In this document: positions 27,643-37,379 of the stretch, in pieces
Layout: the number at the start of each line of letters is the position of its first letter
Position numbering within the stretch: position 1 is the stretch's first letter
NCBI RefSeq assembly: GCF_006345805.1
Contig: NC_043008.1
Location: forward strand, 49,848,001-49,912,000
Direction: 5' to 3'
DNA length: 64,000 bases
DNA from: Octopus sinensis
Taxonomy: Eukaryota
Made by a program: the position numbers and the translations under genes
The notes under the pieces: generated by a model
What the model was told of the DNA's origin: nothing
The model's input: only the letters and a program-made list of their open reading frames with translations
The model's database searches: none

Positions 27643-28202
27643 TTAAGTTATTTTCCAAAATGTCGGTGGCATTAACTTTTCGAACGATGGAACAGTGATC
27701 GCTACAACCCCTCTTTTGGAGCAAACTTCGAAATATACCGAAGACAGTTTCAGGAAACGCATTTCTCCAGTTCCCTTTGCTGTGAACGAACTAAAAACTT
27801 TAGGGCTTGGAATTAATTGGAATGTTACAAAACCATATGTGAATCGCAGAGTTCCTGATTTGGTCTTAGTCACGGTAATATTTCCCCATAAAGAATTACT
27901 GTAGGTTCCTTCATAGCTGGGCCGACTTCCAAATAAGTAAAAACGGTTTGTTTCATTCGAAGGTGGATTTGGACACCTTGGTTTGTATTTTGGGACTTTG
28001 AAATCTTTGATGGAACTCGCATTTATCCAGGGTTCATTACCAAGGTAGAGATCAGCCACATATTGCATTACTAATGTCCTTTTGTAAGCTTGGAAATCTG
28101 AGCCAGTAAGGGCAACGAAAATTCCTAGTTTTTCTTCAGGAAACAAAGTCAGCACCAAATTATTCCCCCAGTTTGTTCCAGTATGCACTATAATGGGATA
28201 TC
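27643..28202 (-). CDS. Beta-lactamase-like gene exon 5 (last; motif III and C-terminal domain)
   Basis: Acceptor ttctatttgcag|GA, 560 bp to TAA. GYPIIVHTGT (HTG triad), LFPEEKLGIFVALTG, YEGTYSNSLWGNITV (DUF3471-like C-terminus by recall). Five exons total 1551 nt = 516 aa plus stop. Confidence 0.9.
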
Positions 28203-28390
28203 CTGCAAATAGAAAAAAAGACAACACCGTAAATGAAAAGAGCAACAGTTAACGGAATTGAAGCCCATTGGCTATTTAGCGACATCAGTGCCTGATTGTA
28301 TACTTGAGTTTCTTATCTACGTATATCGCTAGCGATTGCTTTCGGGCAATCTACCATTGGCATCAAGGTCAAGAAGGAAGGTAGTCCCGG

Positions 28391-28453
28391 TAGCGATGAG
28401 GGAGGATTATTTCCCGCTAGCGATGAGGGAGGATTATTTCCCGCTAGCGATAT
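28391..28453 (+). repeat. 27-bp tandem repeat, about 2.3 copies
   Basis: tagcgatgagggaggattatttcccgc starts at 28391, 28418 and 28445. Confidence 0.85.
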
Positions 28454-29758
28454 GAACAACGAGTGTTTTTATATACACCACAAGTCCATATGAGAGGTTC
28501 TCTCATGGTAACTATCGCAGTATTATTATGTGTTCTGATACAACATCAACTTTGAAGCGGTGATAAATATTACCTTTTGGCATTAAATTACTGCTTCTGT
28601 CGCAATTAATTATTTACAAATTCTTTTATTGCTTCGTGAGTTTCACTCATTTACGTAGATTGTGTGTAGCGTTCAAATTCAAACGACTACAGTCCATCTT
28701 TGCAAATATATGATCCTTTGGTTAATGTAAGAAATCGTCACTCACCTCACCAAGGATATTTGCCCCAAGTACCCCAAGGTTTAAGGATCGGATTACAGGG
28801 TCACTTAAGGGCTTATTTCTTCTTCCTCATGATCTTCGGACCCGAAGTACGGCCGTCAAATCATATCATATCTGGAGAGGGTCAATATACCAGTAACCCT
28901 TTCTTTCTCCTATAGGTGCAAAGCCTGGAGTTTTGAGGGGTTAATCAATTATATCAGCCCCACTGCTCAACTGGTGCTTCTTTTTGGACACCGAACCGAA
29001 AGGATGAAAGGTGAAGCCGACTTTGGTGGAATTTGAACTCAGAACGGAGAGAAGGAAGCATTTTATCTGTGTGCTTACCATTTCGCCAGTTCGACGCCTT
29101 CGTGCCAATAACAAACACGCACTGGTTCTATTTCACTTTATTTTATTTGTCAATTAGTTAATCTTTTAACCAATGAATTGATCGATCGTTTAAGCGATCT
29201 GCCAGCCAATCAGTCAGCTAGATTTAGTCCCGGAGGCATGTCGTTGATGAAGTGGTGAAGGGCGATGAAAAGAGCTTGACAAACAGAGCTGAGTGATTGA
29301 CTGATCGAACGATTAATCAAACCGTCGATTACTTAATTGGTTAAATAGTTAACCAATAGGAACATAATAATTCTTTCTACTATAGGCACAAGGCCTGAAA
29401 TTTTGGGGGAGGGGACTAGTCGATTACAACGACCCCAGTGCGTGACTGGTACTTATTTCATCGACTCCAAAAGAATGAAAGGCAAAGTCGACCTCGGTGG
29501 AATTTGAACTCAGAGCGTGGAGACGGACGAAATGCTGCCAAGCATTTCACCCGGCGTGCTAACGACTCTGCCAGCTCGGAGACATAATAAAAATAAAATC
29601 AAGTGATGTAGAATGAGTGTGTTGTTTATCACTGACATAGTGACCTCCCCACCACCCCGAGAGACAACAAAATATACCCCAACACACAAGTTCACAACAA
29701 GAACGTTGCAAACCAACTACAAATTTAAAATATAACCAAATAAAAACTTTATTCTAAC

Positions 29759-29979
29759 CTCTGTAGAAACCTTTTTTCCATCCAAGCGCATATTTATCAT
29801 TAATATATGCAACTGGCATCTTCGGTCGGCGAAAAACATTTGTAGTTTGTACAAGAAAATTTCGGGTTCCAAAAATATTACACAAAAACGAACGTTTCCC
29901 GTTTAGAAGGAACCGCATCCATTTTGACATATCGTTTGCTGAACTCTGTATTGCACCAGAACCTATACGACCCCACTTC
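29759..29979 (-). CDS. Beta-lactamase-like gene exon 4
   Basis: Acceptor catctttacag|G, donor AGAG|gttaga, 221 bp, phase 2->1. KWGRIGSGAIQSSANDMSKWMRFLLNG...YALGWKKGFYR. Not in the supplied ORF track; read manually. Confidence 0.88.
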
Positions 29980-30096
29980 CTGTAAAGATGTAAATATAAA
30001 TTCGAATTTGAGTATAAATTTATCGTTTGTCAAAAGGGTACGAAACGTTTTGGCACAGCGTTTCTAAAATCAGGAGAAAGTTTAAGATTCTGCGTA

Positions 30097-30260
30097 GGGT
30101 GAGGGTCAGGGTTTAGGGTGGGGGTTTAGGTTAGCGTTAAGATTTAGGTTTGAGGTTGGTGTTTAGGATTAGGGTGGGGGTTTAGGTTAGCGTTAAGATT
30201 TAGGTTTGAGGTTGGTGTTTAGGATTAGGGTTAAGATTAAGGTTAGGGTTAGGGTTAGAC
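30097..30260 (+). repeat. Degenerate telomere-like (TTAGGG) tract with a 56-bp tandem duplication
   Basis: ggttagggttagggttag plus variants; tttaggttagcgttaag starts at 30125 and 30181. Confidence 0.7.
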
Positions 30261-34735: not shown

Positions 34736-34900
34736 TGCGGAATGTTGTCTCTCGTCAATTCTAAGTTTAAACGTAAATAGTTATTTTTCGGCAAACCCAT
34801 CCGATGCGATAGTAGATCCTCTACATTAGCATACTTCGTCCTTTGTTCTGTAGAAAACTCAATGTCCAGGAACTTACTGATTGGCATTGTCTGGGACACA
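34736..34900 (-). CDS. Beta-lactamase-like gene exon 2
   Basis: Acceptor tctatttcag|T, donor CA|gtaaat, 165 bp, phase 2->2. Contains the conserved LLSHRMG (LLxHxxG). Confidence 0.9.
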
Positions 34901-35639
34901 CTGAAATAGACAAGAAAATAAATACAAAAGAAAAAAAACAACAACAAAGAAATAATGTTTAAATAAAATTCTCTTTAAGTCCTGCATGGTGTGAGCTCAA
35001 TCACTGGAACCAGTAAGGGTGTAATAATAGATTGTCGGATAAAACTGTTCGTAACTTTACAATTTTATTTGAATTGTCAAGAAAAATATTTTTGTTTTAA
35101 TGTTTGTTTTTAGCTCTATTCTTCCTCAATAACTTTTCTTTATTGTTTTTTAAATTTGAGTAAATTTCACCTCATTTCAGACATATGAAGGTTTACCACA
35201 TAAGAAAAAGGGAGCATTTTCAACACACCTGCTTCTCTTTGTTTTCAATCAAGGTTGTAAAGCTGCCATATATATATATATATATATATAATGGATAGCG
35301 ATAAAGAAGTCAGGTGAGTGCTGTACGCGTAATCAGTTATAATCCGTGTTATGGTTAATCGCATCAAGTTGTGAGGAGCATCTAGGATTACTTAAGGTAA
35401 GCCAATCCACTGTATTTCATCCAATGGTTAAATCCTGGATTCGCTTCACTGGATTATAAATATTTTACCGAGTGTATGTCTCTATATTCATTGTAATTGT
35501 CTTACACACACACACACACACACACACACAGACATAATTGTCTTATATATATATATATATATATATATATATATATATATAATCCAGCATGGCCACAATC
35601 AAATGACTGAAAGAAATAAAAGACTATATACATACATAC

Positions 35640-36245
35640 AAGTACAGTTGTGGAAATCAGCTTCACGGCGGATGTTAACCTAAAGCTGAAGATCAGTGAA
35701 AAAGAGAACACCTTCGCTGAACTATTGAGAAATCTGCAGTTACGCTATCCAGATTACAAGTTCAGGTTTATACCTTTAATTCTTGGGACACTGGGATATG
35801 TAACACACTGCATAAATACCAATCTCGAGAAATTAAGCTTCTCAAAACCAGAAAGGAGAAAGCTAATTCGAAAACTACAGATCCAACCGTCATTAGAACT
35901 GTAAAAATCTGTAAGTTTCTAGAAGTTTATAATTTAAGTATATATGAGCATGTCTAGATATGCAACTATATGCATGAGAAATGGCAAAACATACAAATCT
36001 TCACATATACATACACACGAAAAGACCCTGCTGATGTTGTTGAAATTCCAATGTAGGAACCTTGGATCTAGGTTAGAAACCGGCTCTTTCTCTAGTGGCA
36101 TGAAATCTTGAAATAAAACTGAATAATGACATACATAAAAACATACATACATGCATACATACATACACACACACACACATAACATACATACATACATACA
36201 TACATACATACATACATACATACATGTATGCATACATACATACAT
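35640..36245 (+). mobile_element. R4/R2-type (RLE) LINE 3' end with 3'UTR and (CATA)n tail
   Basis: EISFTADVNLKLKISEKENTFAELLRNLQLRYPDYKFRFIPLILGTLGYV (RLE C-terminus). The 3'UTR ggatctaggttagaaaccgg recurs inverted at 50310-50550. Confidence 0.7.
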
Positions 36246-36249
36246 GTTA

Positions 36250-36495
36250 TGTTATGGCTGCCCCCTCGTTATCGAGTATGGCCATTGCACCACGAAGCTT
36301 AACTGTTACTGGTGTTGTAATCGAATGTGACCTTTTAGCCCAGCTAAAGATCTACAAGGTCTTGTACAGAATTGGCAACTAAGACCTTTACTGGTAATAG
36401 CCGGCTGTAGTTGTAACTGGGCTTCATGTACCTTTGCATGTCGTTTAAGTCCTCCTGCCGAATTACACTCTCTTCCACATGCCCGACAGATATGA
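36250..36495 (-). mobile_element. RTE-clade LINE 3' remnant with two C2H2-like fingers
   Basis: ICRACGRECNSAGGLKRHAKVH...SCQFCTRPCRSLAGLKGHIRLQH*, then a short 3'UTR (catactcgataacgagggggcagcc) and a simple-repeat tail. Confidence 0.6.
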
Positions 36496-37044
36496 TACAT
36501 ACATACATACATACGTACATGCATGTATACATACATACATACATGCATACATACATGCATGCATACATACATACATACATACATGCATACATATATACAT
36601 ACATACATACATACATGCATACATACATACATACATACATACATACACACACACAACACACACATACATACATTACATACATACATACATACACATACAT
36701 ACACACACCACACACACATACATACATACATACATACATACATACATACATACATACAGACAGACATAGTCACGTGCAATGTTATATTAGGGGTGGATCA
36801 TATGAACTGTAACCGGCTTTAATATCGCTCTTCTAAAACATAACAATATTAGTTTTAAAAAAACGATTTCAGATGAAAATTCTAAGAAAACAAATAGCAA
36901 ATTGAAAGATCACAAACAAACCTCTTTCTTAGAGAGCGTAAATATGAACTTTAAAAATAAAACTAGTTTCTTTATGAACCAACATAAATAGATTATACAA
37001 AACATCAAAGAGGTAGATTAATTATGTAAAATATGTCAACTTAC

Positions 37045-37379
37045 TCTTTCCTATCTTCCATTACTTTGACAAGTGTCGCTGCGGTAAATGCTTTCGTCAA
37101 AGAAGCTAAACCGAATAAAGTATGGTTGTCAACTTTATCTGAGCTGTTTAAGTTACGACGGCCAAATCCTCGTAGGTACACGACTTGGTTATTTTTCACC
37201 ACAGCTACGGCGCCTCCAACCATATTTTTATCTTCTAGCATAGTGTTGGTGAAATTTGCGATCATCTCGTGTATTTGGTTTTGGGAATAATTTTGCTCCG
37301 AGTCGAGACATTGGATCAAATCTGAGAAGAGGATTATAAAGAAACAGCAGAAAACAAGCAGAGCTCTGAATGTCAACAT
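37045..37379 (-). CDS. Secreted beta-lactamase-family serine hydrolase (gigasin-6/flp-like), coding exon 1
   Basis: Hydrophobic N-terminal signal-like segment MLTFRALLVFCCFFIILFSDLIQC; GGAVAVVKNNQVVYLRGFGRRN; catalytic S-x-x-K (S93-L-T-K96). Donor GA|gtaagt, phase 2. Confidence 0.9.

Follow-up and report, generated by a model that had tools for sequence, protein, structure and literature searches.

A two-domain serine hydrolase gene of Octopus sinensis: exon structure, active-site residues, descent and predicted activity

Gene structure and database identity

What does an octopus make with a gene whose product resembles penicillin-binding proteins (PBPs) and beta-lactamases, and how did it come by that gene? 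The question is raised by a minus-strand gene at 37379..27643 in a 64,000-nucleotide (nt) stretch of Octopus sinensis DNA (contig NC_043008.1, positions 49,848,001 to 49,912,000), which was analysed whole and is referred to here as the window. The analysis identifies the gene as a vertically inherited, intron-bearing member of a group of animal two-domain serine hydrolases, in which a PBP/beta-lactamase-like domain of the MEROPS S12 type is joined to a DUF3471 barrel. We consider it probable, with some reserve, that the protein is an active secreted S12-type hydrolase; any particular substrate is much less certain.

Five exons, separated by GT..AG introns with polypyrimidine-AG acceptors, give an in-frame coding sequence of 1551 nt for a product of 516 amino acids (aa). 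Exon 1 (37045..37379, 335 nt; this and all following exons lie on the minus strand) begins with the ATG at 37379, the first in-frame ATG past an upstream stop, and encodes residues 1-24, which resemble a signal peptide, as well as the first part of PF00144 and the catalytic motif S93-L-T-K96. It ends in phase 2 at a GTAAGT donor, and both its length and its donor are the same in Octopus bimaculoides. Exon 2 (34736..34900, 165 nt) carries D140-L-L-S-H144-R-M-G147, which is the LLxHxxG motif, between splice sites that are kept in that species. A long polypyrimidine tract stands before the acceptor of exon 3 (31692..31961, 270 nt), which encodes motif II, Y184-S-S186, and whose donor GTTTGT has GTTCGT as its O. 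bimaculoides counterpart. W259, G265, D273 and W277 are encoded together with the segment 'GSGAIQSSANDMSKWMRFLLNG' by exon 4 (29759..29979, 221 nt). Exon 5 (27643..28202, 560 nt including the TAA stop) supplies H337-T-G339 and the rest of the catalytic domain, followed by a linker and the C-terminal beta-barrel. Many alternative splice combinations also keep the frame open. Among these, acceptor 31992 was dismissed since the polypyrimidine tract would then be translated, and acceptors 29939-29946 were dismissed because the conserved segment 'KWGRIGSGAIQSS' would be lost. When paralogues were aligned to the DNA by tblastn, the alignments were interrupted at the same exon borders as in the model.

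A preliminary description of the locus, made from the letters alone, had proposed five phase-consistent exons and a 516-aa product, and our reconstruction reproduces both. An exact-sequence look-up showed that this product is XP_029643443.1, 'gigasin-6 [Octopus sinensis]', identical at every letter. The gene, its exact product and the family are thus already in public databases, and the occurrence of the family in molluscs has already been published.

The O. bimaculoides orthologue, XP_014791369.1, is likewise 516 aa long and is 93% identical in protein sequence and 93.6% identical in coding sequence. Its exon lengths are the same (335, 165, 270, 221 and 560 nt) and all eight of the eight splice sites are kept, while intron lengths differ. 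The ratio of nonsynonymous to synonymous substitution rates (dN/dS) between the two species is 0.19 by NG86, 0.21 by LWL85 and 0.26 by YN00 and, with values in this range, the gene is under purifying selection. An orthologue has also been kept in Argonauta. The two Octopus entries, which describe one gene and its orthologue, are named 'gigasin-6' and 'D-alanyl-D-alanine-carboxypeptidase/endopeptidase AmpH', respectively, and both names are automatic transfers. Further afield, a family member in the cuttlefish cluster appears as an uninterrupted 527-aa open reading frame (ORF) on contigs of about 2.7 kb from 101 sequencing-run assemblies. Given this origin, the contigs, which are of transcript size, look like spliced mRNA; the 527-aa protein aligns without gaps over junctions 2 to 4 of the octopus model, with a single one-residue gap beside junction 1.

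Signal-like N-terminus, catalytic residues and C-terminal barrel

Hydropathy identifies residues 6-25 as the sole strongly hydrophobic segment of the protein, with a 19-residue Kyte-Doolittle mean of 2.5 against a maximum of 1.33 elsewhere; no further stretch resembles a transmembrane segment. The hydrophobic core (h-region) spans about 13 residues and is followed by S-D-L-I-Q-C. By this measure the N-terminus is signal-peptide-like, in agreement with the preliminary description. Eight N-x-S/T sequons lie at positions 30, 42, 78, 85, 201, 391, 413 and 438, seven of which are conserved in position in O. bimaculoides. Their number falls within what chance would give for this composition (5.0 +/- 2.0 in shuffled sequences, P = 0.11) and was for that reason dropped as evidence of secretion.

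Pfam PF00144 matches residues 45-366 at E 5e-48 (164.3 bits against a cut-off of 27), which bears out the earlier assignment to a class C/PBP-like family. Narrower names are inapplicable: the NCBIfam equivalogs bla_class_C and AmpH score far below their curated cut-offs (70 against 415 bits and 105 against 266 bits, respectively), so the protein should be called neither a class C beta-lactamase nor AmpH. Across 99 animal and bacterial homologues S93, K96, Y184, H337, G339, D140, H144, R179 and W277 are invariant, and W259, G265, D273 and W277 are invariant over an alignment of nine animal sequences. Motif I, S93-L-T-K96, aligns with S59/K62 of the Pyrococcus abyssi peptidase Pab87, and motif III is present as H337-T-G339. 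The S93/K96 pair, the HTG at 337-339, the LLxHxxG motif and the eight sequons were all found exactly as previously given.

Motif II was a point at which the preliminary description needed amendment. Its tyrosine, Tyr184, is present and invariant, but the canonical Y-x-N is not, since the motif reads Y184-S-S186 with serine in place of asparagine. The asparagine occurs in 87 of 88 bacterial and in 7 of 11 animal sequences. Serine is found in the O. sinensis, O. bimaculoides and Argonauta orthologues, and asparagine in the octopod paralogue and the decapodiform copy; because the latter two retain it, the replacement arose after the octopod duplication. This octopod-specific change is a small new point.

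The AlphaFold2 model of the protein (mean predicted local distance difference test score, pLDDT, 91.4; predicted template modelling score 0.90) consists of a PBP-like domain, then a linker modelled with low confidence (about residues 400-425) and an all-beta C-terminal domain whose strands span 429-514 with pLDDT above 90. The latter forms a beta-barrel of roughly residues 426-516. A Foldseek search with the model returned 427 matches in the PDB at E <= 0.001, and among the matches listed 50 of 50 were enzymes of the PBP/beta-lactamase fold. The best matches over both domains were Pab87 (2qmi), SurE, the Lip3 DL-peptidase, the IS11 esterase and D-aminopeptidase (DAP); with the catalytic domain alone they were Flp, ClbP, the R61 DD-peptidase and AmpC. 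When Foldseek and profile searches are taken together, Pab87 (2qmi), SurE, Flp (4gdn), IS11 esterase, ClbP, Lip3 and D-aminopeptidase stand at the top.

The preliminary description had also noticed an extra C-terminal domain, for which DUF3471 (PF11954) was a candidate. The domain is there, but direct comparison with Pfam gives no DUF3471 match in the octopus protein, even at E <= 10. In contrast, profile-profile alignment (hhalign) of cephalopod C-termini with the C-termini of DUF3471-bearing bacterial proteins gives a probability of 95% and E 2.8e-8 over 75 columns. In addition, the Patella and Lingula homologues match PF11954 directly, and nearly all of the bacterial relatives listed carry it. 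On these grounds the C-terminal domain is a diverged DUF3471 barrel.

Among PDB entries the best match in sequence and structure is Pab87 (2qmi), the Pab87/CubicO D-peptidase of P. abyssi, in which an S12-type PBP-like domain is likewise followed by a C-terminal beta-barrel. Its SxxK (59-62), YxN (160-162) and HxG (302-304) motifs (PMC2651629) are in register with octopus residues 93-96, 184-186 and 337-339, although identity is only about 19-25%. The CubicO motifs YAEAF/L, FFYLN and C-terminal ERY (PMC2651629) are absent from the octopus protein, which in the alignment reads N-Y-L-R-L and S-F-M-Y-S-S at their places and ends in ...FWKIT. Moreover, Pab87 is cytoplasmic and archaeal, whereas the octopus protein is an animal one and of predicted secretory type. 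Bacterial 'serine hydrolase' proteins with PF00144 and PF11954 share the architecture, the length (about 500-530 aa) and the invariant residues, at 24-32% identity over 60-98%. Unlike the octopus gene, however, they are intronless, nearly all have Y-x-N, and they fall outside the animal clade described below (bootstrap 80); they are biochemically uncharacterised.

Descent of the family and its relation to oyster Gigasin-6

Word-indexed homologue searches returned a handful of animal relatives and then bacteria at about 30% identity, a picture that is an artefact of the index. At E <= 1e-30 an exhaustive profile search recovered 5647 cluster representatives, and about 100 of these outscore the best bacterial match of the word-indexed search (298 bits). 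Named molluscan members come from Octopus, Argonauta and Sepia, from the chiton Liolophura, from the bivalves Pecten, Argopecten, Ylistrum, Mactra and Pinctada, and from the gastropods Lottia and Patella. Those from outside the molluscs belong to the brachiopod Lingula (several paralogues), the annelid Owenia, the nemertean Tubulanus and the hemichordates Saccoglossus and Ptychodera. From 209 sequences and 443 well-occupied columns a neighbour-joining tree, a modest method, was built with 100 bootstrap replicates. Midpoint rooting split the animals, and the tree was therefore re-rooted on a named bacterial sequence.

In the re-rooted tree every named animal falls within a single clade of 87 leaves (bootstrap 80) that contains no bacterial or metagenome match, and a protist sequence (Ancoracysta) lies just outside it. 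Cephalopods are monophyletic (bootstrap 100) and sister to a gastropod-plus-bivalve group; octopods form a clade within them (bootstrap 100), which holds the 'gigasin-6' orthogroup of O. sinensis, O. bimaculoides and Argonauta (bootstrap 93) and a pair of 'flp-like' paralogues (bootstrap 97). The subclade that contains the hemichordates is unstable (bootstrap 7), and the tree gives no stable deep order within the animal clade. Since the gene is nested among animal sequences and the cephalopod part follows the species tree, the sequences indicate vertical descent with an octopod-specific duplication. The family was present in the bilaterian ancestor or earlier, and the two-domain architecture spans at least lophotrochozoans and hemichordates, which is a small new point.

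The preliminary description had raised a possible ancient bacterial origin. This holds in the general sense published for metazoan PBP-like proteins, which are old inheritances of bacterial ancestry (PMC2266909); nothing points to a special or recent origin of this gene, given its place in the animal clade. The gene has no bearing on whether cephalopods have received genes horizontally. The same superfamily, with the same catalytic motifs and ultimately bacterial ancestry, includes the animal protein LACTB and the metazoan PBP-beta-lactamase homologues of Peitsaro et al. 2008 (PMC2266909). Nevertheless, the best 60 PDB sequence matches do not include LACTB, whether the single protein or the family profile is used, and human LACTB ranks 26th in Foldseek, level with AmpC enzymes. 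LACTB is a mitochondrial, filament-forming protein; the octopus protein differs from it by its signal-peptide-like N-terminus and its DUF3471 domain. Of the combination that the earlier text had set against its own interpretation, vertical descent within LACTB, the vertical descent is what we find, and the membership in LACTB is not.

Searching the window by tblastn with the model and its paralogues revealed no second copy of the gene. An 827-aa 'hypothetical predicted protein' of Octopus vulgaris (P0001) turns out to be chimeric, a fusion of two paralogues that are neighbours: its first 330 residues agree almost perfectly with the 'flp-like' paralogue (P0003), and the remainder corresponds, at 99% identity, to the O. 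sinensis gene starting from residue 20. The fusion implies that a paralogue lies in tandem, upstream and in the same orientation, outside the window and more than 26 kb away. The chimera is a further small new point.

The name 'gigasin-6' derives from the oyster (Crassostrea/Magallana gigas), where Gigasin-6 is a glycoprotein of the shell matrix (PMC5854119, PMC9456362), and shell proteomes of bivalves include members of the family (PMC5854119, PMC6641155, PMC9456362). For the comparison we used P0230, a cluster representative at about 50% identity, which stands for the oyster Gigasin-6 lineage and is not necessarily the oyster protein itself; a published Gigasin-6 peptide (PMC9456362) agrees with it at all of 21 residues, and another shows an 85% match. 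Over about 440 residues P0230 and the octopus protein share 30-32% identity, and P0230 is placed on a long branch among the bivalves of the molluscan subclade, so that the link to gigasin-6 made in the preliminary description stands. The relation is not one of one-to-one orthology, however, as the cephalopod clade is separate and has its own duplication. In the catalytic signature P0230 reads GAHYEDFTD where the octopus protein reads SKHYSDWHG; P0230 has lost the serine, the lysine, the asparagine and the His-x-Gly, and from its sequence looks like a pseudoenzyme. A Pinctada imbricata protein (P0192) in the same molluscan subclade has lost the catalytic serine and tyrosine. Of the 87 animal representatives, about 10 lack at least one core residue and 54 have the full canonical set.

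As far as the sequences indicate, then, cephalopod copies retain the catalytic set and close relatives of oyster Gigasin-6 do not, which is again a small new point. With Ser, Lys, Tyr and His-x-Gly all retained in the octopus protein, 'gigasin-6' as used by RefSeq is a similarity label and no evidence for a shell-matrix role; both it and the 'AmpH' of O. bimaculoides misdescribe the protein. Literature searches for the octopus or cephalopod gene under 'gigasin-6' or 'endopeptidase AmpH' with octopus, or under DUF3471, found nothing. A single molluscan family thus holds intact enzymes (in cephalopods, limpets and scallops) and apparent pseudoenzymes (the oyster Gigasin-6 relatives and the Pinctada protein), and it offers a testable case of recruitment from enzyme to matrix protein.

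Predicted activity, competing explanations and surroundings of the gene

If the protein is an active hydrolase, it would enter the secretory pathway by way of a cleavable N-terminal signal peptide, with cleavage predicted near C24, and would probably be N-glycosylated. Hydrolysis would then proceed through an acyl-enzyme, with Ser93 as nucleophile, Lys96 and Tyr184 serving as general base and proton shuttle, and the His337-Thr-Gly strand lining the active site. In relatives of known structure the barrel controls substrate entry to the active site or brings about oligomerisation. By analogy with the lipocalin-like domain of Pab87, the C-terminal barrel may pack against the catalytic domain on its flexible linker and restrict access or support assembly. 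Pab87 hydrolyses peptides of D-amino acids and removes the terminal D-Ala of peptidoglycan precursors (PMC2651629). With such relatives as a guide, the substrate would probably be a small peptide or ester of D-amino acids or ending in D-Ala, derived from bacterial cell-wall debris or from peptides containing D-residues. DAP, R61, ClbP and the FmtA-type D-Ala esterases point in the same D-stereospecific direction. Most of the characterised relatives have this D-stereospecificity, and the best guess for the octopus protein is accordingly a D-amino-acid peptidase or esterase whose substrates are extracellular. The octopod-specific change of Asn186 to Ser would probably shift specificity and leave catalysis in place.

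Several observations weigh against an active secreted hydrolase of this kind. Transcripts of the exact gene were not found in the collections searched, where the protein occurs on one genomic contig only. The loss of the motif II asparagine could lower or alter activity, the C-terminal domain escapes direct detection by Pfam, and the relatives from which a substrate is drawn are distant (15-22% identical). Moreover, since P0230, the Pinctada protein and other members of the animal clade have lost catalytic residues, non-enzymatic roles do exist within the family.

The latter observation leads to the reading in which the octopus protein is a non-catalytic secreted matrix or binding protein, with the enzyme fold serving as a scaffold, as in oyster Gigasin-6, the shell-matrix glycoprotein that is also part of a larval settlement cue. 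The NCBI name, the position of P0230 in the same molluscan subclade, the presence of relatives in bivalve shell proteomes (PMC5854119, PMC6641155, PMC9456362) and the altered YSS of motif II would all suit such a role. We nonetheless think it quite unlikely: P0230, on its long branch, lacks the Ser, Lys, Asn and His-x-Gly, whereas S, K, Y and H-x-G are all present in the octopus protein; identity between the pair is only 30-32%, and they are no one-to-one orthologues, the cephalopod copies having duplicated separately; and papers on cephalopod shell and eggcase proteomes (Argonauta, Nautilus) have nothing on the family in their main text. The dN/dS of about 0.2 points the same way, although purifying selection alone is no proof of catalysis. 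An enzyme acting on ester or lipid-like substrates, comparable to family VIII carboxylesterases or to the D-Ala esterases FmtA/Flp, is a possibility that overlaps with the hydrolase proposed above. Flp (4gdn), the IS11 esterase (7spn) and a carboxylesterase (4ivi) are among the best sequence and structural matches, but the peptidases Pab87, ClbP, DAP, Lip3 and R61 score equally well or better. The S-x-x-K / Tyr / H-x-G layout is common to the esterases and peptidases of this fold, and the sequence holds no feature that separates the two chemistries; as a distinct account, esterase activity has in our judgement a minority chance.

That the gene is an unexpressed or decaying copy would explain why transcripts of it were missing from the collections searched and why the protein is known from a single genomic contig. 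Against this, the reading frame runs intact through all five exons, a second species shares the protein length of 516 aa, the lengths of the exons and the splice sites at a dN/dS of about 0.2, and the orthologue has been retained in Argonauta, all of which make a silent or decaying copy highly improbable. That the gene was acquired horizontally from bacteria in recent times, or is a bacterial contaminant in the assembly, might be suggested by a fold that is mainly bacterial and by the fact that, after the animal sequences, the next database matches are bacterial PF00144 and DUF3471 proteins at about 30% identity. This explanation is effectively refuted, however, by four spliceosomal introns with octopus SINE-like repeats and microsatellites, by a base composition like that of the rest of the window, by the synteny with a downstream BTB-Kelch gene that is kept in O. 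bimaculoides, and by cephalopod, octopod and orthogroup clades with bootstraps of 93-100 inside the animal clade (80).

To return to the active hydrolase, it can be extended into a more specific proposal for the whole octopod orthogroup: an active secreted D-stereospecific peptidase or esterase, whose enzymatic state is ancestral to the dead bivalve Gigasin-6 and whose Y-S-S has been retuned to a cephalopod-specific substrate, such as the stem peptides of microbial peptidoglycan or endogenous D-amino-acid peptides. In this full form the proposal is speculative and probably wrong in one part or another. The literature searched holds no biochemically characterised animal member of the PF00144 and DUF3471 clade, and an active octopod orthogroup would be the first functional assignment in it. 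For the gene as analysed here the practical value is modest, and none of the small new points named above would come as a surprise to specialists.

The neighbour downstream of the gene, on the same strand, is a BTB-BACK-Kelch gene. In the window it is represented at 23483-24478 (minus strand) by a 331-aa open exon in which a BTB domain (E 1.6e-30), a BACK domain (E 3e-28) and the opening Kelch motif of a Kelch-like protein are encoded, and in O. bimaculoides by its counterpart at L005 14240-14871. As the same Kelch neighbour lies 3' of the orthologue there, again on the same strand, local synteny is conserved. Between the two genes, candidate polyadenylation signals follow the stop codon on the minus strand within 27121..27455 (ATTAAA at 27455; AATAAA at 27242, 27149 and 27121). 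On the other side of the gene, a putative promoter-proximal region at 37412..37534 (minus strand) has TATA-like hexamers 38 and 155 nt 5' of the ATG; both are pattern matches only. Guanine-plus-cytosine content over the gene region is 33-43%, like that of the rest of the window.

Four further ORFs, at 41571-41912 (minus), 61607-61978 (plus), 63305-63949 (plus) and 35650-35904 (plus), have by eye the look of transposase or retrotransposon remnants, with no Pfam match at E <= 0.01. Within intron 1, at 36306-36500 (minus), the tail of an ORF shows two C-x2-C...H-x3-H patterns and a weak C2H2 zinc-finger match (E 0.0012), which falls below the cut-off; a decayed gene or mobile element may have left this piece behind. 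An interspersed repeat of about 240 nt occurs six or seven times in introns 2-4; its copies are 62-94% identical to one another and have in common the core '...GGAATTTGAACTCAGAAC...'. They lie at 28996-29056, 29418-29585, 32356-32768, 33095-33433 and 34532-34700, with an inverted copy at 32050-32138, and the repeat is probably a SINE-like (short interspersed nuclear element) sequence. Finally, long microsatellite and low-complexity arrays occur at 33881-34031, 35499-35589, 36095-36790, 10919-11946, 14684-16545, 20949-22007, 43335-43877 and 46143-46727. They comprise (AT)n, (CA)n, (TACA/TGTA)n, CT-rich and trinucleotide runs, and the majority of the window's long but spurious ORFs stem from them.

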